NCBI GenBank assembly: GCA_964036045.1
Contig: OZ038378.1
Span: forward strand, 4,402,001-4,466,000
Direction of reading: 5' to 3'
Length of the DNA stretch: 64,000 nt
Origin: Eutreptiella sp. 'Long Island Sound 2002'
Lineage: Eukaryota > Protista > Euglenida
Position numbers and translations under genes: made by a program. Position 1 is the first letter of the stretch. Each line of letters begins with the position of its first letter. Of this stretch, positions 3,345-56,442 are shown piece by piece. Below the pieces are notes generated by a model that was given only the letters and a program-made list of their open reading frames with translations, was not told the DNA's origin and made no database searches.

Positions 3345-3425
3345 GTGCGTGTGGCCTGGTTCCCCCAAGTGCCTGCGCTCATTGTAACCGGTGCATGGTC
3401 CATGTCTCGGGAACAGCCTCTGCAA

Positions 3426-12900: not shown

Positions 12901-14179
12901 TGCAAAGCAAGCAACGATTGTGTGCGTGGGCACGCACCCTTTGACTTTTTTGCTTGTTGGGAGAAATTGGCTTGGCTGGACGGTGTAGCCGAGCCACCTA
13001 CCACACTGCTAGGAACTGCTTGGCATTGCATCCTCCTAGGAACGCAAATAGAAGGTTCCCAAGTCCCAGTTTAAGGCAAGGGCTAGGCGGGTGGAGGGAG
13101 TGAAGGTGAGTCTAGGGGTACTGGGAAAGGGTTTCATGGTTTGGGTCATCCATATCAGGCGAAAGCTATTGCATGCCTCCTTTGTTACTTTGCATTGCTT
13201 TTATGGCCAATCATCGTGGAAAAGGAATGGGTTCTTTGGAAGAACCGGGTTGGCAAACGGGCTGCTACCTTGGATTTTTCCAGCTGATTGTCCTGATACA
13301 CGAAATGGATGTTTTGGACCATCAAAATGGCCGTGGCATGGAGCCACAGCTTGGAAGACACCTTGTTTGCCCAATTGCATTCCTTTTGTGGCCCAATCAG
13401 GAGCTTCGTTTAGAAGCACTAGCATCGAGCACCCAAGCAAACCCAGCCCTTGCTAGGGGGGTATTCTGGATGAGGAAATTTGTTTCATCTTTCAAGAAGA
13501 TGGCAAAATTTTTTGTGCCGAACGTTAAAAGACATTCATAGTGCGGCATGCGCCATCCATTTGCACAAGATGTGGTGCTGCAAATTGCTAGTGGCCCGAT
13601 TGCTCGCACAGGTAGAAGTATCAAATGTGTTTTTTTAATGACGTTTCTTAGCCTGCTTCTTAAGCACAACATGGTGATCAGGTTTTTGTGGTTTTTCTTT
13701 TGCTTGCACTGTGCTTGCAACACACTGTTTACATGGTGGGTGTGCATGTGGCAGTTTGAGCCTTGGGCTTTGGAGGGTGGCAAAACTTTCTGAAACAATC
13801 CCCCCCCCCCCCCCCCGGCTAGTTACGGAGATCTTGTTGCCGCCCCAAGATGCCATTTTGGGGTGTGTTGCAAACTTTGGTTATTGGCCTGTATACTCAA
13901 GAGCCTACAATCTTAATACTTAGGATGAAGCGGACAAAAAATAAGCCGAATATGGCCATTTTTGACACCCTTTGGCTGCTGAGAGCTGCCAACGGCTCCG
14001 TTTGGGGAACCCTAGGACCTCTTGCATCCTCTCTAGTTAAATTCCTCTTATCATGGGGGCGCCTCAAGCGCAGTGCGCGCGCAGTGCAACTATTTGGGCG
14101 TCTGGCCGTACTAGAGACCCATACTTTGAGATACTAGGGGCCCCTAGGGGCATCATGGTGACAACAGGGTGCTCTGAGG

Positions 14180-14640
14180 AGGCTTGGTGGGCAAGTGTGC
14201 ATCGTGTTCGTTCTTACTTGAATGGTGTTGGCTGAAATTCGATGGGCGGAAAGATTGTCGGAGTGGAACCACGTCTTGTTTAATCCTAAATACGCCGGGT
14301 GCGTATACAAAGTTACGGTTGCCATTGACAGCTTGGGCAACATCGTTTGGATTTGTCCGTTGGCCCCGGGGACATCGGCGGATGTTCTCATTTGGGATCG
14401 CGAGGGGCCCAAAAGGGTGAAGGGACATTATATGGATTATGAGATTGGCTCCATGGATGGTGCATACAAGGGGCGCCTCCATGTGGCATGGCCATTTATC
14501 GGTCGAAAGACGTTGACCGAGCGGCAAAAGGAGTACAATGATGTTCATGGTTTCTATAGGGCACGCATTGAGCACTGCAATATTGTGAACTGCAATATTG
14601 TACGGATTGCATTGACACACACACATGTGACAATGTGACT
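14180..14640 (+). pseudogene. PIF/Harbinger (DDE_Tnp_4-like) transposase remnant, internally deleted
   Basis: VTVAIDSLGNIVWICPLAPGTSADVLIW...GSMDGAYKG...PFIG...QKEYNDVHGFYRARIEH carries the PG..D, D.AY and R..IEH pattern. Frameshifted upstream and truncated after IEH. Confidence 0.8.
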
Positions 14641-15250
14641 TTTCTTTGATTCTGCAACTGTGTCATGTTGTGCACACAAGTTGCGTATTCTCAATGTGTA
14701 CTTAGTTGACAATGGAACAGAGAGACAGTTGTGTGTTCTTGAGGGTGGCGACCAATGCGCTGTTCATGGCTTTTCCAGTTGTGCATGATGTGTGTTATGT
14801 GAAGGGAAGGTAGTTTGCAACTTTCTTGAGCTAGGGCAGTTTGGGTCACTTAATTCTAAGGGCGTTTCCAAGGGGTGTGCTTGGGGGCTCTTCAGGGAGA
14901 ACATAGTCTAAAAGTAGCGCGCAGTGCGCGCGCAGTGCAAAGATTCCCCCCATGATAACATTTCGTGCAACAAGGAACAACAAGCCAAAACTCAATGTCT
15001 TCAACCCGGTGTTTCAGAATTGATAATTGTTTTTGACGGTCATACCAATGTGCACACCAATTGAGCACGGATTTGGCGTGGCGTTTGTGTGGTCAAAGCA
15101 TTAGTGCTTTAGTGTGTAGTGTTTAGATTCATCCTTGTACAATGAAATAACATTTCCCCCGTCCTCCCCCCCCAGATTGATCAGTCATGCTTTTCCCAGT
15201 TTAGCTAGGGTGAGCGCCCCTGTGATGGTGTCCCAGTATTGTTTTCCAAC

Positions 15251-15642
15251 ATGGCCAAGCGTGGACCTATGCTGGAGCAGGTGGCTGACAGCGACGGTGT
15301 GAGTGACGAGACCACGTCCATGGGGCTGCAGGATGCCTGCCAGGAGCCCGCTTTACCTGACGCCTTGGACCTGGGCAACGTCCTGATTGACTCCAAGAGT
15401 GCCCCCCCCCTGAATCCCAGGCATGACTGCCCCCTCGAATGCAGAAAGGCGTCCCCCACACACCCAGAAGAGCCACCGCACCAAGTGCGCGTCACCTTTG
15501 GGGCCGACATCATGTCAGAGCCCGCGTCTGCTGCTGTATCTTCACCGTCAGTCCTGCTGGCGGTGTTGAAGGGACTATGCTGCTACGGTTCCTTCGTGCT
15601 CTGCTGGTTGGTGCAGCTCAGCCTCCACCTGTACATTTGCAG
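15251..15642 (+). CDS. Orphan multi-pass membrane protein, exon 1
   Basis: ATG after a pyrimidine tract and AG; open frame ends in hydrophobic LLAVLKGLCCYGSFVLCWLVQLSLHLYIC; phase-2 donor ag|gttctg joins in frame to 17742. Confidence 0.65.
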
Positions 15643-16439
15643 GTTCTGTTTGCTGCAGGCGTTATGGCAACGCTGGGCCCCCATGTCTCTCCCTTGCACA
15701 CCCCAGCGCCACACTCTTGATATAGCGCATGGCTTCAGGTGGAGTTGAATCCCAACCTGGAAGGGAGGGCTGGGGGTCCTAAGTTCCTAAGGACACAGGT
15801 TGTTTCTGTTGCATTGTGCCGCCTTTTTGGATCACCTCAGTTGCGGCTCCAACAACCGTCAGTCACCATCAACAACGATGCAGCAGCGGTTGAAAAAGGG
15901 GGGACGGTGTGCAAAGGGCTTGGTCTGTGGGGCTGTGCAAGGGGGATGGGGATGTCTGGGGAGGGTAGCTGTGTGGCTGGGCAAGGGAAAGTGGGGGGGG
16001 GCAATGGAGAGCTGTGCCAAGGAGACTGCAAAGCAACGATCAGGGATTTCGGTGCAGGCTTACGCCTTCCAAAACTGTGAATTTTGGAGCGTGCTCTCCA
16101 CAATTCTGATGGGGGAAGGGGCGTGACACAGAGCCAAGGGGTTTCAAGAGAGTTGGGGCGGGGGGAGTAAAGGCGCGAGCGCAGAACTGCTCTGGTGTAC
16201 ACTGTGAGTACAAGTGCAATTGGGGGTGGGGTGCAGGTCAGGCACGCAAATATGAATGGGCATGAATGTATGAGTTTTGTATGGCACCAGGTGAAGCACA
16301 GTCACTCCCATGTCACACTGTCACATTTATGGAAGCCTCCCCCCCAATGCCCAACACACTCATCTGCAAAGTATGATGCGCACACCTCGAACCCAGGGCT
16401 TTCCCACCTCTTTCACAGAATTGTTGCCCCACAGTAACC

Positions 16440-16623
16440 GCACCATTGAGGTGCATGCGCCACCCCACCCCCCTCGATGTGACCCTGTGGTGCCAAAGGG
16501 ACACAGTGGGGCAAGGTCTGAGCCAGCACAGCCAGCACAGCAACGGTCAACCCAGAGACGTGTGTGGCGGTTTGTGCGCAAACAGTGACATCGCGCCTAC
16601 TTTACTGGGAACCAAAGGACACA
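16440..16623 (+). repeat. 184-bp dispersed repeat, copy 1 (copy 2 at 18871-19054)
   Basis: Direct copies differing at only 2 positions that I can see. Confidence 0.9.
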
Positions 16624-17001
16624 AACTGCCACGGAAGGGGAAGAATAACGTCGGAAACCCCTCTGTGGTGAAGGGCTGTGCGTATACACGTGTATATGCG
16701 TCTACGTATGCGTGTATGTATATCTCTTGGGGACGGACAGGAATATGCCAACACGGAGCGTTTTCAGGGATCGCCGTGATTGTTGCCTCGTTTGTGCCCG
16801 CTGAGTGTCGCAAAGGGAGGGGTATGTGGGGTATATTCGGAAAGCCCTTGAAAAGGGCTATTTGGAACACCCTGGGTCTGCATGTTGTACTAACAGTATG
16901 TTTGAGATTTTTGTCTATTTTGGACAGTGCCTGTGTTGCTTGCTGGCTGTTTTTGTCAACAGACAGCCACCATGTCCGGATACAAATTCACGCCACGTGC
17001 T

Positions 17002-17553
17002 GTTTTTATGTATGCGCGTGTACGTTGTGTACAGGGTGTGTACAAACCATCAGTGCACCCAGCGTTCCAAAATTGTCACGGCCCCCCAAAACCTCAAACC
17101 CCCAAAATCCGAAAGAATGCAACAGGTGCCATGAAAGTTAGAAACTCTGAGCTGGTCATGCAAAGGTTGCTTGCATGTCCTCCACCTCAAGAAACCAAGC
17201 TGTGACTGCACCCTGATTTTATTTTAATTTTGTCACTTGGTGTGTACAACGTGCCGAAAGTGCATACAATTGGTAGGCTACTCCAGTCGTGGCACACAGT
17301 TTCTACAAACTACAGACCGCCGGACCCCTGTGCATGGATAAACGCTGTTGCTGCCCTGTGTTTTGGGAAGGGGGCCAAAGGCGGCCTGAAAAATGTTGTC
17401 TCTTCGCGTCTGCAACATGCCGACAGTGTCTACAATTAGCAGGCCGCGCCTACTTGTGGTGCACAGTGTGTACAAACTGCAGACCATAGGACCCCTATGC
17501 ACGGGTAAACGATGTTGCTCCCCTATACACAACGTACACGCGTATACACAAAC
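17002..17553. repeat. Segment bounded by a 32-bp inverted repeat, containing a ~165-bp degenerate tandem duplication (MITE-like)
   Basis: 17005-17036 vs revcomp of 17521-17552: 3 mismatches. Duplicated block ~17245-17360 / ~17412-17525. No TSD identified. Confidence 0.5.
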
Positions 17554-17741
17554 TCCCTACACAAACATGGTGTTAGTATACACGCAAACAGAAACGCGCG
17601 CATACGTACATATCTGCTGTGGTGTGAGTTCCAGGGCCAAGTGAGCACCCAAGATGCTGCATTACAAGACACCACCTGAAAAACACTCTAGCAACCCCCA
17701 CAGAGTCCTCATGGCCGTGTAAACCGCCTCCACATATGCAG

Positions 17742-17868
17742 GTGGACAGAAGCAAACGTGGCTGGCAAATGGACTGTGTCGTCCGGCGAAGGAATTGCCA
17801 TCGTTGCTGGCGCCATAGCGCTGGCAATCGTCAACGTCCTGAGACGTTTCGCCATCTATTTCCGGGAG
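17742..17868 (+). CDS. Orphan multi-pass membrane protein, exon 2
   Basis: atgcag|g TGG...: WTEANVAGKWTVSSGEGIAIVAGAIALAIVNVLRRFAIYFRE |gtgtgc; phases 2 and 0 fit both neighbouring exons. Confidence 0.75.
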
Positions 17869-18041
17869 GTGTGCAGCATGCTGTCTATCTGCATCCTACA
17901 CAGACCCTCCCAAGACAATCCTGCCAACTTCCCAAATTCTTTCGTAGACGCTCCGCATACCGTTCGCAGAGCCCTGGCCTCCCACACCCTTCGCGTACCC
18001 CTCCCATACCCCTTCTGCCCCCTTCCACACCCTTCGTGCAG

Positions 18042-18449
18042 ATGCTTCGGGCCGCTCACGTTTACAAGGCCTACAGCGTGTTGATAGAGGAGCACGGACG
18101 GGACGTGCTGGAAGGGTCAGAGGAGCAGTGCCTGCGCCTACAGTTGTGCGTGCTGCTGGGCCTCGTGGTGGCGGCCATCCTGGTCAAGGTTGTGCTGACG
18201 GTCCTGTTGGTGCTCTCTGCCATATTTCTGGCGGGAGCAGGTGCGCACACCGCGGGCGCTGCCACAGGCATCCCCTTTGTGTTCCCGTTGATTGCCCTCC
18301 TGTACGTCCTGGACATGGACTATACGTTTGGGGAGTGGCTCTCCAATACAGTGCGGCACGCGGACAGTGAGCGCAAGAGAGTGGAACGGAGGCATAGACC
18401 CAGCCAGAGGCATTCCAAGTCCCGAACCAGCATCGAAAAGGCGCGTTGA
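18042..18449 (+). CDS. Orphan multi-pass membrane protein, exon 3 (spliced protein ~308 aa)
   Basis: Pyrimidine tract plus gtgcag| acceptor; MLRAAHVYK...LCVLLGLVVAAILVKVVLTVLLVLSAIFLAG...IPFVFPLIALLYVL... then a basic tail and stop; GC3-rich coding-like codons. Confidence 0.8.
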   Translation: MLRAAHVYKAYSVLIEEHGRDVLEGSEEQCLRLQLCVLLGLVVAAILVKVVLTVLLVLSAIFLAGAGAHTAGAATGIPFVFPLIALLYVLDMDYTFGEWLSNTVRHADSERKRVERRHRPSQRHSKSRTSIEKAR

Positions 18450-18870
18450 ACTGTAGTTCAGACTGTTGTGACCCCCCTCATCCAATGAGCCTTGTGTTGG
18501 TGCACATCATGCCCCGCAATTCTGGGGCTGTCATCAGACACTGCGAACCAAGCTGCAGCGCCCTTCCTGCAGCGTTCAGATTTGCCACTTCTGGGGCCAT
18601 GGCTCACACGGCTGCAGAGCGCAGCAAGCGCCCGTCACAGTTTCTATCGGAGGTACTCAGATGGCATGCGTGGGTCTGCCTCGGTGGAAGAAGGCAGGGC
18701 ACATTCTGTTTGTTACTACACGTTTGTTAATACCGGTCGTTCCAAAGTGTACGCCTCTCAGTTTGCATTGTGTTTGACGACAGCCGTTTCAAGACGTTGC
18801 TGGTTGTGTGGTCCTGGTCGCCGATATTAGCAATGGCACGGTGCACACCGCCACGTCAGGAATGAGAACT

Positions 18871-19054
18871 GCACCATTGAGGTGCATGCACCACCCCACC
18901 CCCCTCGATGTGACCCTGTGGTGCCAAAGGGACACAGTGGGGCAAGGTCTGAGCCAGCACAGCCAGCACAGCAACGGTCGACCCAGAGACGTGTGTGGCG
19001 GTTTGTGCGCAAACAGTGACATCGCGCCTACTTTACTGGGAACCAAAGGACACA
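18871..19054 (+). repeat. 184-bp dispersed repeat, copy 2
   Basis: Near-identical to 16440-16623. Confidence 0.9.
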
Positions 19055-20960
19055 CATCTGAAGCAGGGCTTGGCTTGAAGCAGTGCTCGCTTGAACCCCC
19101 CACCCCCCCCAAACCGGGTGTCCAGCACCCGCCCCTCTCCCTCCCCTTCCTGATTCGGCCTGGCATGCGGTCAGGATCGTGCTGGTTATTTGAAAACGTG
19201 ACGTCATGGCCTTCCCCTTCCATCACTTTTGCCCATTTGTGAACCTTACCTCAAAGTGGTACGTTTTCGTTCAGTGCTCATGTCTGATATTTGGCCGGAA
19301 GTGTGTTGGAGGAGGTACCCATGGCCATGCCAAATGATGTTGGGGCACGGGTCCGTGGGGTGGTTTGGCTTCAGTTGAGTTGCACAGGCTCTGGGTCACT
19401 GGGCCTCCCTTTCACTCCCCTCATGCCCAACTGTGGCAAAAACCTCTTGAATCATGAGATGTAATCAGACCTGAGCAGAGCACTGTGCATAAGGACGGTG
19501 CGTAAGTGGCGTGCCTGATTCAGTTCGTTTGAAGGCTCTGATGGCGTTCACACCAAACACATTGTCCCTGTACTGCATCTCTCTTGCTTTCGATCGTTGT
19601 TGACACACTGCAATGGCTTCGTGCCCTTTGCTGTTACGGGGCGGGGGCTGCTGGCATTCCGGTTGTTGCCAAATGCCTGGGTCAATGTAGTTTTGCCAGT
19701 TTGATGAAAGTCTTGCGTGCGTGGTTTTCCGTGATTTTCGAAGGAAGTGCAAAATAGGAAAAGATAAATAGGAAAAGAAAAAATAAAGGGAGGGTTAGGC
19801 TAGACCCCTGCATTGCTGCACACATCTGCATTCACCCCTGTTCAGCCCTATCTGTACCAGGATGCTGCATCTGGCATCAAATGAATGGCAATACCTCATT
19901 TCTCACGGTCAAAGAGCACTTCCTTTTTCACATGGGATGTTGGGGAGAAAGAATGGTTGTCATGATTGGGTTGCCGAGAAACAGGCCAGCGTGCCACCCT
20001 TTGGGGCAGAAGCTTGGAAACGTGATATACCCAGTAATGGCCCCTGGAATGGGGTGTCCAGCCAGAGGCTTGGCGTGGGGTTCTGGGAGCAACCTTGGCA
20101 GGCGGTTTGGCTGCACATGTGTTTGCGGCACGGCGAGCCCCATATGGGCAATGCAGCCCTTGTGGCACGCCCAATCCCTCCCTCCGAACCTCCACCAGTC
20201 CAACCAGATTGTTCCTCCAGCTTTGTGGCGAACTGGAGTGTTGTTTGGTGTCACGAGACCTCACATATGCCAAAAGGTAGTTATTGGCGGTGTGATGTTG
20301 CAGTCAGAATGTTGCCGTGGCAAAGCTCACTTGCTTCGTCACATTGAATACATCCGAACACCTTCAAGGTATCACACGTACGTCAGCACTGCGCCCCTGT
20401 TTCGGCAGTCGTCGGCTGTGGGTCTTCTCTAGCCGAGGGTAGAAAGGGGTGTACGTTGGGATAGGTAATACAAAAGTACCGTGTCGGGCACGCCCCGGGC
20501 AAACACTCCCCTGTGCACGGAGCAAAGGTGTAGTGTGTACCATCAAGTGGTACTTTCCAAGGAATGTAGTGATCTAATGAGAACCACCCAAAGATACCCG
20601 GTTGACTATCCAGGTGCCACACGTGATGACACAATGCCATAGGCCTTTGTGCACACGATGTCCGACGCTCGAGTCATTTCCGGCTGAACAACACCAGTCA
20701 GCCCATGCACTGCATACACTGCTGCAGCGCCGCCACTGCCACCCACTGGCCATATCTGTCATGGATGAAGGGCACGGGTCAGACATGTACTGATGTTGTG
20801 GTTCAGGAGGATGGCATCGTGTCCCCTGTCCTGATTCCCATCTTTTAGTGGTGTCCTATCTTTTTAGGAACCCTCAGCCTTTGACACCAGTGAAGCATGC
20901 TCAGTCACTCGAAGATTTTTGCTGAATAAGCTATCTTTCTGCCCCCCTCCCGTCCCTCGC

Positions 20961-28684: not shown

Positions 28685-28968
28685 TTACTCATGGACCATG
28701 AGCACACCATTACTCATGGGGGCCATGAGCACACCATTACTCATGGGCCATGAGCACATGGGCCACGAGCAAACCCTTACTCATGGGCCATACGCACACC
28801 ATTACTCATGGTCCATGAGCGCAATCTTACTCATGGGCCATGTGTACACCCTTACTCATGGCGCATGAGCACACCCTTACTCATATGCCATTAGCACCCC
28901 CTTACTCATGGGCCATGAGCACCCCCTTACTCATGGGCCATGAGCACACTCTTCCTCATGGGCCATGA
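28685..28968. repeat. 25-bp minisatellite (ttaCTCATGggcCATGAGcacaccc), ~11 units; resumes at 35025-35105 (~3 units)
   Basis: Same unit on both sides of the YR retroelement; each unit contains a 15-bp quasi-palindrome. Confidence 0.9.
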
Positions 28969-29084
28969 AAACTAAAGTTTATGCAGTAAACTTGAGTTTA
29001 AATTGGGCAAGGGGGTGGGAGGAGGGCACCTTGTGAACACTCGCCTAGTGTTTGTTTGTTTTGTGGTGTGCCGTCGTCCTGACC

Positions 29085-30101
29085 ATGCCTAAGTCTGAGA
29101 ACCAGCCAATCAGCTTTGAGGATTACATTGAGCAGGGCCAGCATAATCTGGCCACGCAGCTGCTAAACGCGTCTACGCTTCAGCAAGACACGGACAGACT
29201 CGTGACGGCGGCAAAGACAGCCGGAGTCGATACCGTTGAACTGGCAGATCGGCTGAGACAGAAGTATGGACTGAAGGGATCCATGGAGGGCATCTACGAG
29301 CAAGTCGTGGCCTTCGGGACCCTCCACAAGCGGACCTTCAACTGGAACGACTGCACATTCTACATGTCAGCACAGCATGCCCAAGTGATTGCAGGGAACG
29401 GGACCCCGGAGAAGAACCCCGCGGACGTGGTTTCAATTGAGGGCAGCTCCAGTGCCAGCGGGTCGCCAAACGACAAAGGGGTGCACGCGGACATCGAGAA
29501 AATGCGCCAAGAAATGGAGGACATGAAGCTCTTGATGGGGCAACAACTAAAAACGATACAAGAGCTCCGAGCGTCCAAGGCAGTGCCGCAGCTGCGGCAG
29601 GTGATTTTCGTACTGGAGGCGGGACAGGAGATGGAGGCCAACGAAGCGAAACCTGCCTGGGCGAGGGCGATGGCAGGGGCAATGGCAGGCTGGGCGGCGG
29701 AGAATCTGCAAAGCATGCTGGAGTCTAAGTACGAGGCAGGCATGAAGGCCCTGTCCGAAGTGTGGTCCCACCTGCTATTCGAGGTCGAAAAGGAAGAAGT
29801 CAAGGCGCAGCTGGAGGCTCGAGCCGCAGACGGAGCAAACGAGGCCAGGGGCTCGGAGAAGGCGAACCTCAAGGAGGAGGGAGCGAAGACCAGGCCGAAG
29901 ACGGGAAAATCGGCTCCGCAGCACGTGCAGGACAGACGGAGGGAGCGAGTGAAAGACCGCTTCACCAACATGGGAACACCCGAGGAGACGTACGAGTCCA
30001 AAGGCGGCAAGGTGCTCAAAACATGGAAGCCCCCGCGATATTCCTGCGACGTGTGCCGAGTCAAGCACTGGTGGTTCCAGTGCCCAGTCGAGAGCGACTG
30101 A
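29085..30101 (+). CDS. gag-like ORF with C-terminal zinc knuckle
   Basis: MPKSENQ...; coiled-coil-like middle region; YSCDVCRVKHWWFQC = CX2CX3HX4C; begins just after repeat A1. Confidence 0.8.
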   Translation: MPKSENQPISFEDYIEQGQHNLATQLLNASTLQQDTDRLVTAAKTAGVDTVELADRLRQKYGLKGSMEGIYEQVVAFGTLHKRTFNWNDCTFYMSAQHAQVIAGNGTPEKNPADVVSIEGSSSASGSPNDKGVHADIEKMRQEMEDMKLLMGQQLKTIQELRASKAVPQLRQVIFVLEAGQEMEANEAKPAWARAMAGAMAGWAAENLQSMLESKYEAGMKALSEVWSHLLFEVEKEEVKAQLEARAADGANEARGSEKANLKEEGAKTRPKTGKSAPQHVQDRRRERVKDRFTNMGTPEETYESKGGKVLKTWKPPRYSCDVCRVKHWWFQCPVESD

Positions 30102-31688
30102 ATGGAAGGGGGCCCCCGTCGCCTCGGGGCCCAACGGGGCGGCGGGCGTAGGGGGGCAGCAAGTGCCCGTGGAGGGGACAGTTGGGGGTTGGCCCTCAAG
30201 AAGATGGAGCGACTACGCACGCCAGACGCTCTGCACAGTTGGCAGACGTTTGTCGTGCTGGGATGGGAAGAATCATCATTGGGGACATACCAGTGTCACC
30301 TGCGCAGGCTGGCGGCGGTCGAGCGGCAGTTCCCACGTGATGCCAAGGAGCGGGTCCTGGAGCAGACCATACTGGAGTGCGCCCGATTGGGGAAGTCGGA
30401 GAGCACAATCAAGGGGATCATCAGCGCGGCCATTATGGCGACAGAAGTGCGGCTGGTTGACGCGTGCATCCCGGCCACCATCTGGAGATCCGTCAAGGCG
30501 GCGAAGAAGACAAGGAACGCGGCAAAAGAGCGTATCTGGGGATCCCCGATCATGCTGCTACACATGGCGGCAAGGACCAGCAGCCTGGAGGACTGGGCAG
30601 TGGTCGGGCTGGCCATCGTCTCGTTCCACCTCTTCCTGCACGTCGGAGAGGCAGTCACCCTACAACCTTGGGCGGTCGTGGATGACGCGGTGCGGTTCTT
30701 CGACTCCAAGACGAGGCAAGACTGGCAACAGAGGTCCCTCACGGCGCTTACAAGGGAGTGGCTGCAGTGGCTCCAGCGACACTTCCCAGAGCCGGCGGCG
30801 GAAGGAAGAAGACCGTGGACGACACAACAGCTGGAAAAGGGCATGCAACGCCTCCTCATCGGATCCCCGTTTGAGGGTGCCCGCTGGCACGCGTGGCGCA
30901 GAGCCGGGGCTCGGGCTATGTGGACGGCTGGGGCCACAATTCGGCAGATCGCCGTGTGGGGCCGCTGGGCGCGTGACTCCACCGCGCGGTGGTACGCGCA
31001 TCCGACCGAAACGCAGCCCGTGCAAGCGGAGGATTTCTGGCCGCGGCCCCCCGAGAGGGAGCTGCAGGCAGGTGGCGCAGCCGCACGACGACCCTACGAC
31101 TCGAGCAGCTCTGGCCGTCTGGGATACGACAGCAGTGGAAGCAAAGAAAGGAACATGTGGCCTTTGGGCCCTCAAGGACCATGCCCGGGGCCGACAGGCA
31201 CGCTGGGAATTCGGCGGCGGCCCGGGGCGGGGCGGGGAGCAAACTGCGACCGAAGGGACAGCTCGCCAAGCACAGGCAGGCACCCGGCAACGGGGGCGGC
31301 AGTTCGACAGGGGCGCGACAAGTTCGGGACGGTGGGCAGCAAGTGCCGGCCTCCTCGACCGAGTCGGCTTCGTCCGACTGCCGACCCACAGAGGAAGCCC
31401 CCACCCCCTTGCGCCTGGTCCCTAAGTTCAAAAGAGTGCGCGCTGAGGAAGCCGGAGCACAGGGCGAGTTCAAGCGAGTACGGAGAGCCACCGGCAGCGT
31501 GTCCTACTCGTCTTACTCCTCCACCACTTAGTGGAGAGCCGTGGCTGTGCATGGGCGGGTTTGGCGCTTTGTTGGCGGTGCTGGTGCGACTGGTTTCGCG
31601 GGTGCGGTGGGTTGCGGTGGTATGCGCGTCGTGCGTGGCCTGCGTGTGTCGTGTCGTTGTGCGAGGCCATGGTCATGGAAGGGCTTAG
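30102..31688 (+). CDS. Tyrosine recombinase ORF (domain ~30200-31010; first catalytic Arg appears as His)
   Basis: FL(H)VGE, DSKT, HAWRR (HxxR), GRW and ARWY follow the R-K-HxxR-W-Y catalytic order. The 3' part is low-complexity and may be frameshifted. Confidence 0.88.
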   Translation: MEGGPRRLGAQRGGGRRGAASARGGDSWGLALKKMERLRTPDALHSWQTFVVLGWEESSLGTYQCHLRRLAAVERQFPRDAKERVLEQTILECARLGKSESTIKGIISAAIMATEVRLVDACIPATIWRSVKAAKKTRNAAKERIWGSPIMLLHMAARTSSLEDWAVVGLAIVSFHLFLHVGEAVTLQPWAVVDDAVRFFDSKTRQDWQQRSLTALTREWLQWLQRHFPEPAAEGRRPWTTQQLEKGMQRLLIGSPFEGARWHAWRRAGARAMWTAGATIRQIAVWGRWARDSTARWYAHPTETQPVQAEDFWPRPPERELQAGGAAARRPYDSSSSGRLGYDSSGSKERNMWPLGPQGPCPGPTGTLGIRRRPGAGRGANCDRRDSSPSTGRHPATGAAVRQGRDKFGTVGSKCRPPRPSRLRPTADPQRKPPPPCAWSLSSKECALRKPEHRASSSEYGEPPAACPTRLTPPPLSGEPWLCMGGFGALLAVLVRLVSRVRWVAVVCASCVACVCRVVVRGHGHGRA

Positions 31689-32461
31689 GGAATTGCTGGA
31701 CGGCATTTACCCCGCCGTGCCGGAGGGTGAGGTGACTCCTGAGATTGCACAAAAAGGGATAGGATCCGTGGGTGCGGTTCCGCTGCCGGAGTGGCTATGG
31801 CAGATATATGTCAGTCCGCGACAGGAGTTTTTGCTGTCGTCGGCGGAGGAGGTGCGGAAGGTGCGGGGGGGCCACGGCTGACATGCTCAGCGCCATTGCA
31901 AGGACGGGGGCACTACAGCAACTGTCGAGGCAGGAGGCGGATGCCTTGGGCATTCTGTGGTCGCCTACGGCGGCTGCCTTCACCATCCCCAAGAATGAGA
32001 CCAAGGCGCGGCTTATCCTGCACGGGGTGCGCGCCAACCAGAGGCAGTGGGAGGGCGGGTACAAGGTGCCGCGTGTCAGCCTGCCTCAAGTGGAGTCTTT
32101 AGCGGAGGCTTTTTCGCAAGGGCTGCGTGGCTGGGGGGCCAACATTGACGTCACAAATTGTTACTGGTCCATACTGCTGCCTGAGGGGAAGAGCCACCTG
32201 TTTCGTGTGGGGGGGGAGGAGTGCATGTGGGTTTTTAAGACGCTGCCGTTTGGTTGGAGTTACAGTCCACTACTGTGTCAGCGACTGCTGGCACAGTTGA
32301 CGGGGAAGGTGGGGCTGGAGGTGGTAGGGGCGGTGCTGCGGCTCATGCACTACCTGGATGATTTTCTGGTGTTCGGCGACTCCGAGGCTGCCGTAGCTAC
32401 AAAGCTGGCAGCGTTCAAGGAAGTTCTGGCAAACGCTGGCTTCCTCATCAGTGACAAGTCG
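31669..32461 (+). pseudogene. Reverse transcriptase domain (pol; frameshift near the G-run at ~31866-31875)
   Basis: AFTIPKNETKARLI, IDVTNCYWSI, LPFGWSYSP and HYLDDFLVFG are DIRS-order RT motifs. Putative N-terminus MVMEGLRE...VSPRQE is in another frame. Confidence 0.9.
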
Positions 32462-32677
32462 CATCCATGTTAGCAGTGGCTTGTCGTCCCTCAAATCCTC
32501 ACTCAACTGGAACACCTCTCTCCTGAATACATCCAACGCCCTGTACGCGCGTCCCTGTTCCACACCCCACTTTTGCGCAAAAAGCAGCGAAAGCTGATAC
32601 ATGGTCTCTCGGAACCTGGCCTTGGAGGGCCGCTCCGCCCCAAAGGTAGCATCAGACGTTAACCTCGCCCCGACGTC
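32462..32677 (-). other. ~215-bp insertion in pol whose minus strand is an uninterrupted coding-like frame
   Basis: Removing about 214-217 nt restores ...ISDKS-(S)SQPERELVFLGK. Minus strand reads LDVGARLTSDATFGAERPSKARFRETMYQLSLLFAQKWGVEQGRAYRALDVFRREVFQLSEDLRDDKPLLTWM with no stop. Confidence 0.65.
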
Positions 32678-33506
32678 CAGTCAGCCGGAGAGGGAGCTAG
32701 TCTTTTTGGGCAAGCATGTCGACTTTGGGCGGGGGGTCATTCTGAACACCAGGCACACGTTGGAAGATGCCCTGAGTAGGTACGTGCTGATGGCATCCAG
32801 GCCGGTTACGCGAAAGTCCGTACAGCGGGTGGTGGGGAAGTTGATCTGGGCATGCAGACCGTCGCATTGGTCGAACCTATTTCTGGCGGGGCCCATTGCG
32901 CACGTGCAGTGGGGCGCAAAATGGATGCCGCGCCCGCCCACGAACCTTCTGCGGTCGCTGTCGGGTGCGTTGTGGTTTGCGGGAAGGGGCTGGTGGATGC
33001 CTACGTCACCCCCCCCGCCCCCAAAGGGGCTGTGCCCGCAGGTGTACTCAGACGCGGCGCGGGACGGAAATAGTGGCAGGCTGGGTATGTGCTCATCGGC
33101 GGGAGCACACCACTCCCTGCGTGTGCCGCTGCAGAACCAGCAAGTGCTGGAATTTCAAGGGGCGGCGGCGGCCGTAAAACCGGTGGTGGGACGAAAACTC
33201 CCGTGGGCTACGCTGCATCTGGACAACCAAGGGGTGCTCTGGGGACTGAGAACGGGGAAAGTGGGAATTGGGTTGCGGGAGCAGCGTTGGTGTGTCCGAC
33301 AAGTAATGTATGCTCTGGCAAAGGGGGGGACTTCGGTACACCTTTTGTATGTACCCGGGGCAATCATGCCGGCGGACTACCTGTCTCGGGTCCGCAGCAA
33401 TTTTTTTGGTGACAAGAGCATGGCACTGGGGTCTGCCTTCGACCAAATGGCAGATTTGTTACCTGTTTGCGCTCAGACAGAATGTTGGGGCGTCTTGCGG
33501 TTCTGA
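32678..33506 (+). pseudogene. RT thumb plus DIRS-type RNase H domain (pol, 3' part)
   Basis: LVFLGK; YSDA, NQQVLE, LDNQ and PADYLSR supply the D-E-D-D residues. Confidence 0.88.
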
Positions 33507-34163
33507 TTGCGGGCCGTGAGTCTGCGCAACTGTTGTGAGCCTGCGGTGGGTGTGCGTGAGCGTCGTGCGTGGGCCCGGCAGCAAGTGCTTGGGCTGTTGA
33601 GGGGAGTGTTGTGCAGTGCTCGTGGCAGAATTTGTTTTGCGGCACCACGTGCACTACACATGCCACGAGCCGGCGGCGCACAGCGCGATGCGGCGCAGGT
33701 GGCGGCAAAGCGGGGGCGAAGAGACGATAGACTGGTGGCGGCTCACAGGTTTGAAGAAGTATGCGAGGTGGCGAGCGTGTCATATCGAACGTGGACGGTC
33801 ACACCAGAGCTGGCGAAAAGCAAGCGCTTTCCGGTCGTGATGCGATTATGCAGACGTGTAGAGGCAACATGGCAGCGCGAGACGCTACGCAAGGTCGAGG
33901 GAAAGCCACAGGGAACGCACTCCATGGAACGAGCTGTCTTCATCCCACAGTGGACCGGGGCGACACACGGCGTACGAGTCTCCGTAGCGGTGGAAAAGCT
34001 GAAACACGGGCCACGACTGCCGCCGGGGACGCAAAGGCTTTGGGCCGCCGGCTCGCCGGCTATGGTGCGGGCGGTGGCCGCGGTGATGCGGGAAGTGCAG
34101 CAAGAGGGGGGTGGGCCCGGAGAGGCGGCAAGCGCAAGTGGAGATGTGGGCCAGCCTCAGTAA
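33507..34163 (+). CDS. Possible fourth ORF of the retroelement (218 codons, unknown function)
   Basis: Open frame directly after the pol stop and ending just before B1; first ATG at ~33660. The region is GC-rich, so a chance ORF is possible. Confidence 0.35.
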   Translation: MRAVSLRNCCEPAVGVRERRAWARQQVLGLLRGVLCSARGRICFAAPRALHMPRAGGAQRDAAQVAAKRGRRDDRLVAAHRFEEVCEVASVSYRTWTVTPELAKSKRFPVVMRLCRRVEATWQRETLRKVEGKPQGTHSMERAVFIPQWTGATHGVRVSVAVEKLKHGPRLPPGTQRLWAAGSPAMVRAVAAVMREVQQEGGGPGEAASASGDVGQPQ

Positions 34164-37100
34164 GAAGGGTGATCTTGAGTATTTTTTTTGTGTTCCTTGG
34201 TGGTGGTGGTGGTGACGGATGGTGTCGCCGACACAGCAGCAAAATGGTCACGCGACACTACGTTTTTGGGTTCAGCAATGTCCACGACTGTGCACTGTTG
34301 TCCCGTCTGCTGCGTGGATGGCAGTGAGGGGAGGTGGAAGGAGGGGCATGGGGTTTGGTGGGGCGAAGCAGCAAGTGCCAAGCCCATGGGGGGAAAAACA
34401 ATTTAAACTAAAGTTTATGCAGTAAACTTGAGTTTAAATTGGGCAAGGGGGTGGGAGGAGGGCACCTTGTGAACACTCGCCTAGTGTTTGTTTGTTTTGT
34501 GGTGTGCCGTCGCCCTCCCCCCCTCCCTAAACCACCGGGCGCGTGCTAGAAGTGCGTGGGTGAGCGCGCAAGGCGTGGCCAAGGGACGCAAGGGCCGCGG
34601 GGCGAAGTGTGGCGCAGGGGCACAGAGCAACTCGCCAGCGAGCGGCCCCGATAGGGCCGTGACACGCTTCACGGGAGAACCACCGCCCACCGCAGGCACA
34701 GGTACAGGCGCGACCGTCGCACAGGCGATGGACCAACGTATATGTGTGTTGTATAAACGTCTATCGGGACCGTGGATGTCCCCTACCAAGCACCACCCGC
34801 ACCACCCCCCGTTCCTTGGTGGTGGTGGTGACGGATGGTGTCGCCGACACAGCAGCAAAATGGTCACGCGACACTACGTTTTTGGGTTCAGCAATGTCCA
34901 CGAGTGTGCACTGTTGTCCCGTCTGCTGCTCGGATGGCAGTGAGGGGAGGTGGAAGGAGGTGCATGGGGTTTGGTGGGGCGAAGCAGCAAGTGCCAAGCC
35001 CATGGGGGGAAAAACAATTTAAACACCCTGACTCATGGCCCATGAGTACCCTTTTACTAATGGGCCATGAGCATCCCCTCACTCATGGGCCACGAACACA
35101 CCCTTACAGCCCGCAAGACGTGGCTCTAGGGGCACCTTAGCCTCTACACGCCATGGGAGGCTCTTCTTTCGCTCCTTGGTGGTGACATTAAGCTCAACCG
35201 GGGGGCCCTCATGTGATCCCTGGTTGGCGGTGAATACCACATTGAACAAAGGAGTGGTCAAGTCCGCTACCAGATGCATGCAACCTTCGGTGGGCCTCCT
35301 TCAACATTGGTCGATGTTACCAGCCCTCTTTGAACCCTCATTCAAAGCACTTTGGGAAGCCTCGCTGTTGGTCATCAACTCGTGCTAGCACCTCGTTAGA
35401 TGGGCATTGTCACCATCCTATCAAGGCATCCTACAGAGTGGAAGACTCAACCGAGACAAGGTGGGGCCATGGCTCTGGGGTACACTGCGGTGGCCGGGGT
35501 TCAGAGCACCCTGGGAAACCAAGCCAGCACAATGTTCATGATGCTGGTAGCATCATTGCCAAGCAATGCAAGCATGCCTCTTAGCCTACCTCACCGAGTC
35601 CCGGTTTTGGGACATCGCGCGACACATGCGAGACGTGGAAGCCTGGGGTGCTCAAATGGCGGCGAACTGCATCCATAGACGAGCTACGAATGTGCACCCG
35701 CGTGCAGTTCCCGCACTCCCTTCAGCACTCTTTCCCGCCGGTCCAAGCACACTGGAGGCACTTCCATGTGTTCTAGTGGTTGTAGGCACGGGTCTTCGAC
35801 AAAATGCAGCACGTTCCGTTCTTTGTCAGCAATGAGCGGCCTACACACATCGTCTCGCTCGTTAAGGCGGCCCCACCATACGCGGCTAAAGCCACGGCCC
35901 GCAACACGTGGAACCACACCCGGGGGGTCCTATCCATTCCCCCACGGGCACGGCAGCTGTTCGAAGATACCTTAGCCACGATGGAGGACCTTCGATGGCA
36001 GCTGACGCAGGCAGCCACCACCGTGGAGCACACCTGGGTCCTAGATGCCATGGCTCATCGCCGCTACGTGGCGCCGCGCAAGGGGCCCAGAGAGCCCTCG
36101 CCGCCACTGGCACCGACGCTGGTCTCGCGGCCAAGCGAAGCATGTGACATCCCAACCGCCCCTTTCTTGGAGCGGGCCAAGCAACCGATGCTACACGCCC
36201 AGTCACAAGGCGTACGGCTAAACTTGAATGCGGTGGTGCAAGCAGTCGCCCGATAGGCCACCGCCTGGAAGTCCATCTTGTTGGCACACCACCGCAAGCA
36301 ACTACGGCGGCAAACATATTTCCTTTACAGGAACGAACAACGCGGTGGTACGTAGAGGCGCAGCATGCAGTGTGCCGGATGTCCTAGTTAGCGGACTTCT
36401 GCCGGCTTTCGGCAATGGGGCATGACGGTGTACCCCGAGGCGTAGTCCATGGCAATGCGCAAGCTGAGCACGGCGTCCATGTGCTGGGAGCACGCCCATT
36501 TATTGCGGACCGCTAACGTCTGGGCGGAGGAAGCGTGTGGGTGGCACTACCTGTCTCAAGTGCATGCGGTTACCCCTCCGGCGCTACGGCGGACGACCTT
36601 GTCGGACCTGCAGCGGGTGGTCCGTGGGGATAGTGTGCAGCACGTGAAGCGCCCCAGTGGCAATGTCCGGAATGTGGCGCACAAGCGATGCAAGGTGGAA
36701 GAACCACCAGTATTGGAGGCCAGCACCCACCTCCGGGATATTCAGATCCCACTCGAAGACATGGGCGATGTTATTGTTTTAACTGGATTGTAATTCCCCC
36801 GAGAGGTCCGGGGGGACGCACACATCTGTGCAAATGGGGCGACAAAGGTGGGGCAAGGCACGGGACTCGTTCCTCCTGCCTCCCCGCCGCTACTGGCTTG
36901 GTTGGGGTAGGTCATACCGAACCCACATCCAAAACTAGCCCTGGCACTGCCCCATGAGTTGCTGCTATGTGTACTCTTAGCGGACACTTGGTGGAACTTT
37001 GATCACAAATTAAAAAAAAGGATGGAAGATCCCGCAAAACTGAGATTGGCTTTGATTCCTGCTTGAGGGGCCGAGGGGAACGTTGAAAGCCTCTTGTGTG

Positions 37101-39746
37101 ACCAAGACATAGGCTTGACCTCATGCCCATGGTCGCTAGCAGCCACCTCAAGCAGGCATAGTGCAATGCCCATGTTTGCCTCTAACCATTGGTCACCATC
37201 AAAAACGTGTGGGCGGGGATGGCCACCACCCACGTGCCTTGCATTTTGTTTAATAAGATTGGAGGGCAGCTTTTAGTGGCGAACACCCCGAGCGCACTTG
37301 TACCGATCTATGTAGTCTTGTTGGTTTTGCAACCTTTAGGACCAAGCCATAAGCACATGGAGGATGACTCTATGGTGATGCATGTATGCAGTATGACGTC
37401 CTGTTGCTTCCACGGCCACTGGACCCTCAACAACTGCACCCCATCCTCCCCCTAGTACAGAAAAGGGAGGCACAACCAGCTGGGTAGTGGATACGGCACT
37501 GTGTTGAGTTACCAGATCAGGCCAAGGGATGGGTGTAGGAAGTCTTTCCCATGCACAACACAATGGTGTACACCTTGCGAGGCAGGGCTAGTGTGGTGTA
37601 TAGCGGAGTGCAGACTGCACATGTGTAGTGCGTGCGCAATACCAAAAGTGGGGTGTCCTCATGAAGCAAATGGCTAGAAAACACAATACATGTTGATAAT
37701 TGCAAGATGTTATGGATATGTAGGGCTGTTAGCCGCACACGCTGTGTGCATAGAATTTCTAGGAGGATGGAGGAGGTTTGGTGTCACCCCATTTATTCAA
37801 TTGTCCCTTGGTCCATTTTTCTTTTCTTGACCTAGTGTCCTAGCATTACCAAGCTCGCCGTGAGCAATGCTAGGCTTGACGTGAGCTCACCATGGGCAAT
37901 CTGACAGGAGTCATTTTGGATTGTGGATTTTTGCCTTTTGTAGGTCATTCAACAGTGCCTTCGAGAGTGGTGGCAAAGCCAGAGTGGGGACGAAGGACAT
38001 TTCAGCGAAGCATGGTAGCATCACCAACGATTGCGTGCTTTTTTTTCTTGTAACTCACGTACACAATATGTGATTTACATCATTTTCAATTTCCCCCCCT
38101 TTCCACAACTGACAAAACCAGTGTACACAACTGACAGGGAAAAATTGCCCATGTTCCGCCACACACCTAGGGAGGATTGCAGCATTGCACATACACAGTG
38201 CGCAAACCATTTTGAGAAGACGCACATATGTAAAACTACCCCCCTTGAACAATGCCAATTTCCTAGCACAGGTTGTTACCAGGTCGCTCTGCAGGTATAC
38301 TCAAGGTAGGAATATAAGTTGCTCCTTCTTTGTCAACCTTGACCCGTGTCCTTGACAGGGGAAGAAGCTATGGTATGTTCTGACAGTGTACTTAGATCCC
38401 GAGATTGACTCGTACTGCTGCAAGACTATTGCAGAACTATTGCAGCTTCGTCAAAAAAAATTTCCCAGCATAGGTTGTTACCAAGTACAACACATTATTG
38501 GCAAAACTTCCCTACAAAACAACAACCTACCAATAACGTGGAATGAAATCCTCTTTCTTTATGAAGTGGCATGACTAGAATTGGCTCCCACTTGGGCATT
38601 TGACAATGACAGCTATTAAGATCAAGCAATATTAGAGAGGAAGCCTCCGCAAAGGATGAAGATAATGATGATGGTGTTTGTTGCCAAATTTGTGCGCACC
38701 GTCCACTTGATATATCTCAGGTACCACTTGAATGTGTACATCCTGCGTGCCATTGCATAGTTGTACTTTGGGTGCCAAATTTGATTGTTCATAGGTACAT
38801 TCAAGTACAAGGCTGGAGACAGCAGAATATTCAATTTGTTTAGCTTGCTGCTTTGCCCTGTTGTACAGAGGTGGTGGGTGGTTTTTTTGGGTTGGGTTTC
38901 CTTTCTGGTGGGATTTGCCTCATATGCACTCTATGCGCACACAGTGCAACAACATTGCCATGGACTGAGTGATGCAACGAACTAGCCTTGGGCGGGCTGG
39001 GGAGTAGTGAAAACCCTTCAACCCGGCCAGTGCCATGTCTTTTGTGTGACCTTCTTGTTGGTCAAGATTTGTTATTGGGGAGTTGGGTGTATGAGGGGTG
39101 GGAGTGTAGCTTTGTGGGTGAGAGTACAATGTGTATTCCCCGTGCTCATGATTACAGCATAATGCCGCCATGGTGTCCACTCCCATAGCAATAGCTGGCA
39201 AGCTTTGCTCTCAGTCATTCCTGGACAGTCAAGTACAGAGGGGTGCGTTCCACCACTGATGTGGCAACACAGGCCCAGCGGGTCCCAACACATCAGGACT
39301 ACATAATTCCAGGCATTTTCCCCGGTGTTGCTGGTGGAGTGTACACCATGTACCATAGGCCAGGCGGTTCTGGGGGTGGGGTGGGGGCAAGAAGAAAGTC
39401 CGGGGGATGGGGGAAGCCGCATGTAACAATAACCAGCAGCACAGGAAGGAAGGAAGGAGTTGCTTGCTTGATTGGTTGATGCTCTTTGGAGCAGAGATCC
39501 AGGCATGCAGCGCGGCCCTCTTGCAGTTGAGGGTGCGCTTAAGTCCGTTGTGGTTGGGGTCAGGTGATGTCTTTCCCAGCCAAAGTCTTGTCTTGCGAAT
39601 CTTCTGACCTAGGCATTTTGTTACAATACGTGGTCACAAACGATGACACTTTGCGCCCCACTGTATTGCAGCATGGATCACGACTCTGTGTCATGGTAGT
39701 TGCCTGCTTTCACATCTGCAACAACCCGAAGCCATTTGGCCACACT

Positions 39747-41898
39747 ATGATTCTACTCCCATGGGTGTTTGTGTACCTGCTGATTCCATGTGCCAATTCA
39801 TTTCTCAGCGACAGCCTTGTGGCAGATTATCTGCAGAGTCACAATTCTAGGCGTTGCTTACATGGGGTATCGGATTTGACATGGAGTCAAGGCGTGGAGA
39901 CTAGTGCTCAATCCTACGCAAATACTTGTCCCTCAGGACACTCGTCCACCTCATACGGCGAGAATATCAAGTACTCCACATTTAATCCAACATCTGAACA
40001 AACCCTTACCGGCTGGTACGATGATGAGATAGGAAAGTATGATTACAGCAACCCGGTCTTCTCTACTAGTACCGGTCACTTCACCCAGGTGGTTTGGAAA
40101 GCCAACTCTGAATTGGGTTGTGGGATCTGCACCAGTGGCTCTACTTGGCAGTACATTGTGGTTTGTCAGTATAATTCTGGAGGCAATGTTGCTGGTCAGT
40201 TTACGTCCCAAGTGCCGGCAGTCACAAAGACTGCGGGTGAATGTACGGCTGATTGTGGTACGCCAAGTCAAACTGGCTTTGATTTTACCGGGTGTTCAAA
40301 CACGTTTCCGAACTCATGCAGTCCGTCATGTAGGGCAGGATATTACACGACATCCCGGCGAGTATATGCTCTGTGCCAAAGCTCTGGTTCGTGGTGGTAC
40401 TCGGGGACTTGCATCGCGTTTACTTGTCCGACGGGCGCGACTCACACAAGTGCCAATGTTGACATGAGCACATGTCAGTCAGGCACTGGATTGCAATATG
40501 AGGGGACGTGCAGTCCCACATGCAACTCAGGATACACTGGCAGCCCCACTGCTGTTTGCGGAACTAATGCGCAGTGGACCTACGGTGGATCCTGTACTTT
40601 GGCCGCCGGGTCCACATCCACAAGCTCCACCTCTGGGACCTCCTCCACATCCACAAGCTCCACCTCCGGGACCTCCTCCACGTCTACAGGCACCACCTCC
40701 GGGGCATCCTCCACGTCTACAGGCACCACCTCCGGGACCTCCTCCACATCCACAAGCTCCACCTCCGGGACCTCCTCCACATCCACAAGCTCCACCTCCG
40801 GGACCTCCTCCACGTCTACAGGCACCACCTCCGGGGCATCCTCCACGTCTACAGGCACCACCTCCGGGGCATCCTCCACGTCTACAGGCACCACCTCCGG
40901 GGCATCCTCCACGTCTACAGGCACCACCTCCGGGACCTCCTCCACGTCTACAGGCACCACCTCCGGGGCATCCTCCACGTCTACAGGCACCACCTCCGGG
41001 ACCTCCTCCACGTCTACAGGCACCACCTCCGGGGCATCCTCCACGTCTACAGGCACCACCTCCGGGACCTCCTCCACGTCTACAGGCACCACCTCCGGGA
41101 CCTCCTCCACATCCACAAGCTCCACCTCCGGGATCTCCTCCACATCCAGCAGCTCAGGAACAGCCTCCACATCCGGCACGAGCACGTCCGGGACAAGCTC
41201 ATCAGGAACCTCCTCCTCTGGAAGCACGACGGGTGCCATCCCCAGCTGCTCAGCAACTGCTGGCAATCAAGCATTCGATACCATCAGTGCCGATACCACA
41301 ATGTGTGGGACCAGCACCTTCAATACAGCCGGCTCGTCTGCCGTGAGTTCCAACGTATACTACTCCTCAGGCGCCACTGTTTCCATTGACGCGGATAAAA
41401 CATTTGATGGGACCGGAATCATGGTCTTTCAAGAGCAGTCCACAGTGTCTGTAGCCGCGACCACTACATTCAACGTGCCGGTCTCCGTCCAGACGGCCAC
41501 GTTCACGGTCACTGCGGCCATGACATTCTCCTCCACGGTTTCGCTTTCGGGATCGGGATTCGTGGTGTCGTCCAGCACAGCATCGGTGACTTTTCAGTCA
41601 TCTGCCACAAGCATTTCAAGCTCCACATTCTCGGGCCTTGGGTTCACGGAGTACTATCAACCAACCAGTGGTCTGATGACCAGCAGTGGAAACACATGGC
41701 TGATCCCCCACCGTGTGCGCCGTGGGACTTCTGCCCGTCGCACTGACGTCTCCACAATCGTGACTGTTTCATCGTGTGGGGACTCCTTCTCAGACCTCGC
41801 CATCAACTCTGGGACGGCGCTGCTGGTGTTTGTCAACTGCACGCTGGTCAGCAACGATGCGTATTCGTCCTCGGCTGGGGCTGTGACGTTCTCCTCAG
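39747..41898 (+). CDS. CAP (SCP/PR-1/Pry-like) domain type I membrane protein, exon 1
   Basis: Signal peptide MILLPWVFVYLLIPCANS; CAP motifs HN..R..H, GENI, WYDDE, GHFTQVVWK..LGCG, VVCQY..GN; two Cys-rich repeats; S/T/G stalk; beta-rich region; phase-1 donor cag|gtgctt. Confidence 0.9.
40610..41140 (+). repeat. 33-bp coding tandem repeat (STSTGTTSGAS/STSTSSTSGTS), ~16 units
   Basis: Directly visible; in frame within the CAP gene. Confidence 0.95.
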
Positions 41899-42338
41899 GT
41901 GCTTGTGTAAGGGTCTTTCTTGTTCCATGTCCAATCTTCTTCCAGTCGAGGAGTTGGGCACCGTCAGCTTGGAAGCGACGGCGGGCACAGAGCCGCCGAT
42001 GGCGGTTGGGGTGTCGGGGACGGCGGTTGATGCTTACAAAGGGTGGCCGGAGTGCAAGGGATGGCAGTCGGAGAGCAAACAAAGGCTGTTTGAGTGACGG
42101 TGCTGCAAATTGAGGGTGATTGCAGGATGGGTAGTGTGTGCAGAGCTGCATTGGGACAGGGTAGCATTGGGTAGCTCTGGTCCTTGATTCAGAGAGGTTT
42201 CTGGAGTGCCTTCTGGTGAGCAGACTTCGCCAGCTTGCCATGTCCTGGAGCCCCTCACCCCAAAACAAGAGCTGCATTGGAACAGAATTCTCTGTTTAAG
42301 TTTGAGGTTTCTAAGGCCCCTTTGCTTCTCCTCCTCAG

Positions 42339-55165: not shown

Positions 55166-55659
55166 TGCTCCGGCGGAGCGCGAAGCCCTGCCCGCGGCCC
55201 TGCTCTATGCCCCGGTGGCTGATGAGCATGGGGCGCGGTTTCTCGAAGGTGCCCTGACCTGCACCTCAGCATGGCGAGGTAAGCGGACTCGCGTGCCCGG
55301 AGACCATCACATCTCCGCTGTGCCAGTGCGGCCATACAGAGACTTCGCATCAGTCGTTGTCACAAATAGTCGTCTCTGTTTGCCGCCGCTTGTTGCTGAA
55401 GCTTCCGACGCTTGTTGCTGAAGCTTCCGACGCTTGTTGTACAGTACGTATGAGTAAGTGTGGGTGTGAGCTTGCCCCCTGTGACTGGGCCAAGAGATGC
55501 TCCTACTCCTGACGGCAGGGACGGAGCAGCGTTTTCGTCCTGCCCGTCGGTTCCTCTGGCTTTCAGGCATTTGGAGGGGCAGCGAGTCCCGCTTGCGCAG
55601 ATGTTCCTGCCACTGACTGCCTTGTATTTGGGTGTGTCTGGATGTGTGTGTGCGTGCGC

Positions 55660-55661
<2 letters not shown>

Positions 55662-55711
<50 letters not shown>

Positions 55712-56369: not shown

Positions 56370-56442
<73 letters not shown>

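Follow-up and report, generated by a model that had tools for sequence, protein, structure and literature searches.

A defective, probably DIRS-order tyrosine recombinase retrotransposon from Eutreptiella, with probable conservative integration at N-A-N-C targets and no preference for the satellite that harbors one copy

The window analyzed here is a stretch of 64,000 nucleotides from the euglenid Eutreptiella sp. 'Long Island Sound 2002' (assembly GCA_964036045.1, contig OZ038378.1, positions 4,402,001 to 4,466,000), and it contains, embedded in a 25-bp minisatellite, one copy of a putative tyrosine recombinase (YR) retrotransposon of about 6.05 kb (6052 bp, window positions 28973-35024), with the order Gag, YR, reverse transcriptase (RT)/RNase H. 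The copy is defective, and with a probability of about 0.85 it represents a DIRS-order YR retrotransposon that integrates conservatively at short targets of the form N-A-N-C, without preference for the satellite. The family is a new one of a known kind, inserting in a known way, and the satellite context of the window copy is incidental.

The ends of the element are split direct repeats arranged in the order A1...B1-A2...B2 (Table 1); the two copies of repeat B are 98% identical when positions 34201-34404 are compared with 34817-35020. B1 and A2 are joined by the tetranucleotide AAAC, which is also found after B2 and before A1, and the equivalent of a circle junction is present inside the element as B1-AAAC-A2, the element itself starting with A1 and ending with B2-AAAC. 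An earlier note on this DNA had placed AAAC at the left (28969-72), internal (34405-08) and right (35021-24) junctions, and all three are present. The internal and the right AAAC correspond to one another in the two copies of repeat B, so that only the left one is independent; for a single copy, the chance of such a coincidence is about 1 in 300.

The evidence on integration comes mainly from other copies of the family. A word-based search with the YR returned about 100 member sequences of approximately 90-96% identity, all from ENA ERZ25074135, and 12 further loci (L001-L012, about 230 kb in all) were fetched from this data set, which is the same assembly as that of the window. At the DNA level, the nine full-length copies, including that of the window, are 88-98% identical. 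The 4-mer found immediately left of the element is AAAC in the window, L005, L006, L009 and L011, AACC in L001 and L003, TAAC in L002, GAAC in L008, TATC in L004, GACC in L007 and AATC at a solo A-B unit, also in L004. In all 12 of these main-family junctions an A occupies position 2 and a C position 4, a result expected by chance with a probability of about 1e-15, considering base composition, while the other positions are variable and the core differs from AAAC in 7 of the 12. Conversely, the right end is constant: in 11 right ends out of 11 it reads ...CAATTT-AAAC, followed by unrelated sequence. Wherever the two cores are mismatched (7/7), the left side has the variant and the right side AAAC. 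The position of the exchange can be deduced from these cores, since the base of the target is kept on the left wherever position 3 differs, and this places the effective exchange point immediately 3' of the C.

Which of the two 4-mers belongs to the target is indicated by uninterrupted paralogues of the insertion sites. For each insertion the left flank, the left 4-mer and the right flank were joined, omitting the right AAAC, and aligned to paralogous repeats lacking the element; five joined flanks align to such empty sites without any gap at the insertion point and with a single 4-mer each (Table 1). The target thus has one 4-mer, the left 4-mer is that of the target and the right AAAC is that of the element. 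In L011 the left flank is duplicated downstream, and the duplicate ends in AAAC and continues into sequence unrelated to the element, a finding that informs on the left side only. The satellite itself provides a further register: the units flanking the element are 6102 bp apart, a distance made up of the 6052-bp insertion and two units of 25 bp, and after in-silico removal of the element, keeping one 4-mer, Tandem Repeats Finder (TRF) reports a single continuous 25-bp array of 12.0 copies across the join. The statement of the earlier note that the joined flanks give one correctly sized satellite unit with no other duplication is therefore borne out. On the basis of the five paralogous empty sites, the duplicated flank of L011 and the satellite register, integration of this family produces no target-site duplication.

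These observations agree with the reading of the earlier note that the element is a YR retrotransposon, whose insertion appears to be a conservative recombination within a very short core common to the B/A junction and the target, and they can be accommodated by the published model for the DIRS order. According to this scheme, the complementary DNA (cDNA) would regain the B/A junction from the internal copy, and the junction (...CAATTT-AAAC-TAAAG...) would recombine conservatively with a genomic tetranucleotide, presumably through catalysis by the YR and with circular or single-stranded cDNA as the substrate. In the junctions sampled here, the target 4-mer has the form N-A-N-C, with AAAC the commonest version and mismatches allowed at two of the four positions; with an effective exchange just after the C, the target 4-mer is kept on the left and the AAAC of the element on the right, with nothing duplicated. 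The window copy landed in a variant satellite unit that by chance read AAAC. Indeed, the satellite consensus in this register reads GCAC, without the A that is needed at position 2, and the comparison with the AAAC found at the junction indicates that a variant unit was used.

Several points weigh against this interpretation. The assignment of the YR is based on a sub-threshold match, the only one found in Pfam for this protein (Phage_integrase, E 2.6e-4, 21.3 bits against a curated cut-off of 27.1), and on the R...HxxR...Y motifs recognized in the alignment of the other copies, so that the protein is best described as a putative tyrosine recombinase; a profile of the YR found no match among PDB sequences at E values up to 1, and the AlphaFold2 model obtained from a shallow alignment has a predicted local distance difference test (pLDDT) score of 36 and is unusable. 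The sample comprises 12 junctions, out of roughly 100 copies in the assembly, and the truncated L010, a member of a 74%-identical subfamily, has TGCC as its left 4-mer. Finally, recognition probably extends beyond the 4-mer in a way that the model does not explain, since L002 (at 6873) and L005 (at 6872) each inserted independently into one dispersed host repeat, hitting the same nucleotide in two diverged copies of it: the flanks are 73-82% identical, against 96.8% for the elements themselves, whose deletions differ. An initial ATGT is found in three right flanks (L002, L005 and L012), a hint of a wider motif AAC|ATGT. The 16-nt target flanks show no significant similarity to the junction of the element itself (left p about 0.14, right p about 0.79). 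An empty copy of the host repeat shared by L002 and L005 is found in the window at 16830-16970, on the minus strand.

The constant orientation of the mismatched cores also bears on how the exchange is resolved, and it provides a simple sequence test of this for the recombinases of such elements. If both strands were exchanged at the borders of a 4-bp overlap and the heteroduplex then segregated at random, the variant should be found on either side with equal frequency, and the 7/7 distribution departs from 50:50 with a two-sided p of about 0.016. A mechanism in which only one strand is exchanged and the product is then replicated, the substrate being single-stranded or hairpin-folded cDNA as in CTX phage and in integron attC sites, would account for this bias. 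It would also fit the inverted repeat that spans the B/A junction, a potential 19-bp hairpin whose exchange point follows nucleotide 10 of the first arm; the single-stranded fold of 34399-34441 has an energy of -13 kcal/mol, with a z-score of -9.1 for the minus strand and of -7.3 for the plus strand. Furthermore, the cDNA of DIRS-1 is mostly linear, single-stranded and competent for integration (PMC7192593). However, the asymmetry is derived from seven junctions, and biased mismatch repair, or a pair of cuts both lying no more than about 1 nt from the C, would produce the same pattern. The hairpin has no support from covariation, the copies being too similar, the diverged L010 displays an uncompensated change, and the inverted repeat could equally represent paired protein-binding sites in duplex DNA. 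One-strand exchange is considered unlikely; if true, it would be a eukaryotic counterpart of CTX-phage and integron attC recombination and a sequence-level footprint of the single-stranded cDNA intermediate reported for DIRS-1.

Far less probable is the proposal of the earlier note that the family targets the satellite, by recognition of the palindromic 25-bp unit at a fixed register and with an invariant AAAC, similarly to TATE, which inserts at one position of the telomeric hexamers (PMC6681497). The window copy does lie exactly in the satellite register, and the inverted arms described in each unit are confirmed as a 15-bp near-palindrome, CTCATGG-G-CCATGAG, that matches on both strands. 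However, the examination of the flanks of other copies revealed both unrelated surroundings and variable cores: no other insertion point lies in this satellite or in any other tandem array, none of the 12 fetched loci contains the 25-bp motif, the left cores vary as described above and the satellite consensus lacks the required A. In addition, the window was chosen for this very feature, and its location is thus no evidence of enrichment. The tempting but wrong notion of a satellite safe haven is therefore withdrawn.

A 4-bp target-site duplication generated by staggered cuts made preferentially at AAAC-like targets is least credible of all, since the identity of the flanking 4-mers in four copies with both ends preserved (among them the window copy, L005 and L009) and the presence of AAAC at the left end only in L006 and L011 are outweighed by the same AAAC at the internal B1/A2 junction, which assigns it to the element, by the different left and right 4-mers in seven junctions and by the single target 4-mer seen in the paralogous empty sites and in the satellite register.

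Comparison with the known groups places the family described here probably within the DIRS order: it has an RT, repeats able to restore the circle junction and no target-site duplication. Its layout, compared with the published description, is that of a VIPER-like element. VIPER and TATE of kinetoplastids have the order Gag, YR, RT/RNase H and A1...B1-A2-B2 split direct repeats (PMC6681497) and lack target-site duplications (PMC12278014); the Eutreptiella family shares these features, with a Gag-like first open reading frame (ORF), as well as a zinc-knuckle-like motif in Gag and the lack of methyltransferase and hydrolase domains, neither of which was detected by Pfam in the element proteins. 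Pfam also found no integrase or endonuclease domain in them. The solo A-B unit of about 370 bp in L004 (2589-2958), flanked by AATC on the left and with AAAC at its right end, is comparable to SIRE, a short derivative of VIPER. Differently from VIPER and TATE, no close sequence relationship to any named protein can be detected, and, differently from TATE, the family is not restricted to a single repeat.

DIRS1-like elements have a 3-bp circle junction (AAT, AAC or AAA) that recombines with an identical genomic sequence without duplication (PMC3266345; PMC7192593). The short (A)AAC core is of the same type, it is likewise found on both sides and nothing is duplicated; however, the core of the target here need not equal that of the element, only A-N-C being fixed. 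DIRS1-like elements also possess inverted terminal repeats, an internal complementary region and a methyltransferase, while direct repeats and no such domain are present here. Split direct repeats of the A1...B1-A2-B2 type are shared with Ngaro and PAT-like elements, and solo A-B units are also known from Ngaro elements of Cafeteria (PMC8547959), but in these groups the order is Gag, RT/RNase H, YR, and an additional domain is present (the hydrolase of Ngaro, the methyltransferase of PAT), whereas here the YR is upstream of the RT and no such domain is found.

What is new beyond the DIRS model is that the match to the target is inexact, with only the A and the C fixed, and that the effective exchange point lies immediately 3' of the C. 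The ends of DIRS-order elements are often mis-set in annotation. The description, at nucleotide resolution, of such a site for a YR retrotransposon with split direct repeats, verified against paralogous empty sites, can be useful for the annotation of elements of this order.

When the YR and the RT/RNase H were used as queries in word-based protein searches, only copies from the same assembly were returned. A full HMMER search with the RT/RNase H against 1.8 billion representatives identified as the nearest non-self proteins RTs with 29-41% identity; the 20 non-self matches that were looked up are all unnamed or "hypothetical", the one with 41% identity being from metagenome contigs. Two distant RT relatives have weak matches to the model of the C-terminal (RNase H) part of the hepadnaviral polymerase, which echo, as a hint only, the link reported between the RNase H of VIPER and hepadnaviruses. 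An exact scan of JGI (Joint Genome Institute) metagenome contigs for the 24-nt B/A junction gave no matches.

The window copy has four coding segments on its sense strand (Table 1). The Gag-like ORF matched no Pfam family. The RT/RNase H ORF is intact in L005, where it encodes 722 amino acids and matches RVT_1 with an E value of 3.9e-13; the broken ORF of the window was queried as separate uninterrupted pieces. Besides the change of the box I Arg of the YR to His, which is Arg in the other copies of the alignment, the window copy has private 1-bp indels near 31051, 31865 and 33008: the first is a deletion that shifts the frame of the YR tail, the second is an insertion in a run of G that breaks the RT. 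Those near 31865 and 33008 are both in homopolymer runs and could be assembly errors. The RT is also interrupted by a 214-bp piece of the element, whose usual place is near 31657, between the YR and RT ORFs, where it forms the start of the RT ORF; here it is found about 800 bp downstream and inverted. GTCG/TCG microhomology is present at the breakpoints of this piece, and its displacement could be a template-switching or recombination artefact restricted to the window copy. Despite these lesions, the lineage evolved under coding constraint, as indicated by the excess of third-position changes among the copies: the variable sites at the first, second and third codon positions are 41/37/73 in Gag and 70/65/162 in RT/RNase H. 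A further ORF downstream of RT/RNase H (L004, 11766-12305) was rejected as a gene, since its variable sites (42/23/18) show no coding pattern.

Table 1. Features of the YR retrotransposon copy and its satellite context in the window, and paralogous empty sites of other insertions
Feature	Position	Strand	Description or basis
25-bp minisatellite, left part	28685..28968		about 11 units; TRF
Left junction 4-mer AAAC	28969..28972	+	target-derived, from a variant satellite unit (consensus here GCAC)
Split direct repeat A1	28973..29080	+	5' end of the element; 99% identical to A2
Gag-like ORF, 338 amino acids	29085..30101	+	C-terminal CX2CX3HX4C zinc-knuckle-like motif
Putative tyrosine recombinase ORF, defective here	30102..31531	+	sub-threshold Phage_integrase match and R / HxxR / Y motifs in the alignment
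RT/RNase H ORF, broken here	31657..33506	+	Pfam RVT_1, E 1.2e-13; read as two pieces
Displaced 214-bp piece of the element, interrupting the RT	32461..32674	-	blastn against the L004 and L008 copies
Split direct repeat B1	about 34186-34404, then AAAC to 34408	+	repeat comparison
Inverted repeat across the B/A junction	34399..34441		19-nt arms, 1 mismatch, 5-nt loop
Split direct repeat A2	34409..34516	+	repeat comparison with A1
Unique spacer between A2 and B2	34517..34810	+	A2-spacer-B2 is the counterpart of a SIRE-like unit
Split direct repeat B2	about 34811-35020, then the element's own AAAC 35021-35024	+	repeat comparison
25-bp minisatellite, right part	35025..35104		about 3 units that continue the register of the left part; TRF, unit spacing
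Empty paralogue of L005 (filled core AAAC)	window, near 16900	-	AAAC
Empty paralogue of L002 (filled core TAAC)	window, same position of the same repeat as for L005		AAAC
Empty paralogue of L008 (filled core GAAC)	L007, near 12838		GAAC
Empty paralogue of L009 (filled core AAAC)	window, near 23721	-	AAAC
Empty paralogue of L007 (filled core GACC)	L005, diverged		GATA

The 11-mer GCAGCAAGTGC occurs five times in the window (30156, 31336, 33578, 34368 and 34984), against 0.13 occurrences expected by chance, always inside the element and on the sense strand only. The first site is just inside the YR ORF, near its start, the second in the tail of this ORF, upstream of the RT, the third past the stop of RT/RNase H and the last two 37 nt before the ends of B1 and B2, and these positions are kept in other copies (L001-L009); the motif could serve as a signal for processing, as a splice acceptor or as a protein-binding site.

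Rearranged copies are found among the fetched loci. In L012 (12470-12642) the copy stops right after B1-AAAC, A2-B2 being absent, and a displacement of about 8 kb affects its 5' part; L006 contains a nested insertion of 7.4 kb inside the RT (11648-19096); the L011 copy is truncated within B2 at 13352, and the duplicate of its left flank is located 0.8 kb downstream. In L001, an RT ORF found at 2666-5677, 1.2 kb upstream of the YR element, was considered as a second YR family and rejected, being of the long interspersed nuclear element (LINE) type, with RVT_1 and zf-RVT domains. Many other dispersed repeats are common to the fetched loci and the window.

The gene fragments found next to the copies of the element include those of an ammonium transporter, seemingly in pieces, of a kinase with GAF, HisKA and HATPase_c domains, and of proteins with BTB and CAP domains; these genes seem exon-split, and their content hints at a genome unlike that of trypanosomatids. 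Rfam and tRNA scans of the window found no RNA genes. An uninterrupted ORF of 849 amino acids with a CAP (cysteine-rich secretory protein) domain is present at 39564-42113 and includes an in-frame tandem repeat of 16 copies of 33 bp (40611-41143). Simple repeats, namely two (GT)n tracts and (GTGTT)28, are located at 55632-56452 and adjoin a 21/63-bp minisatellite at 54720-54909.

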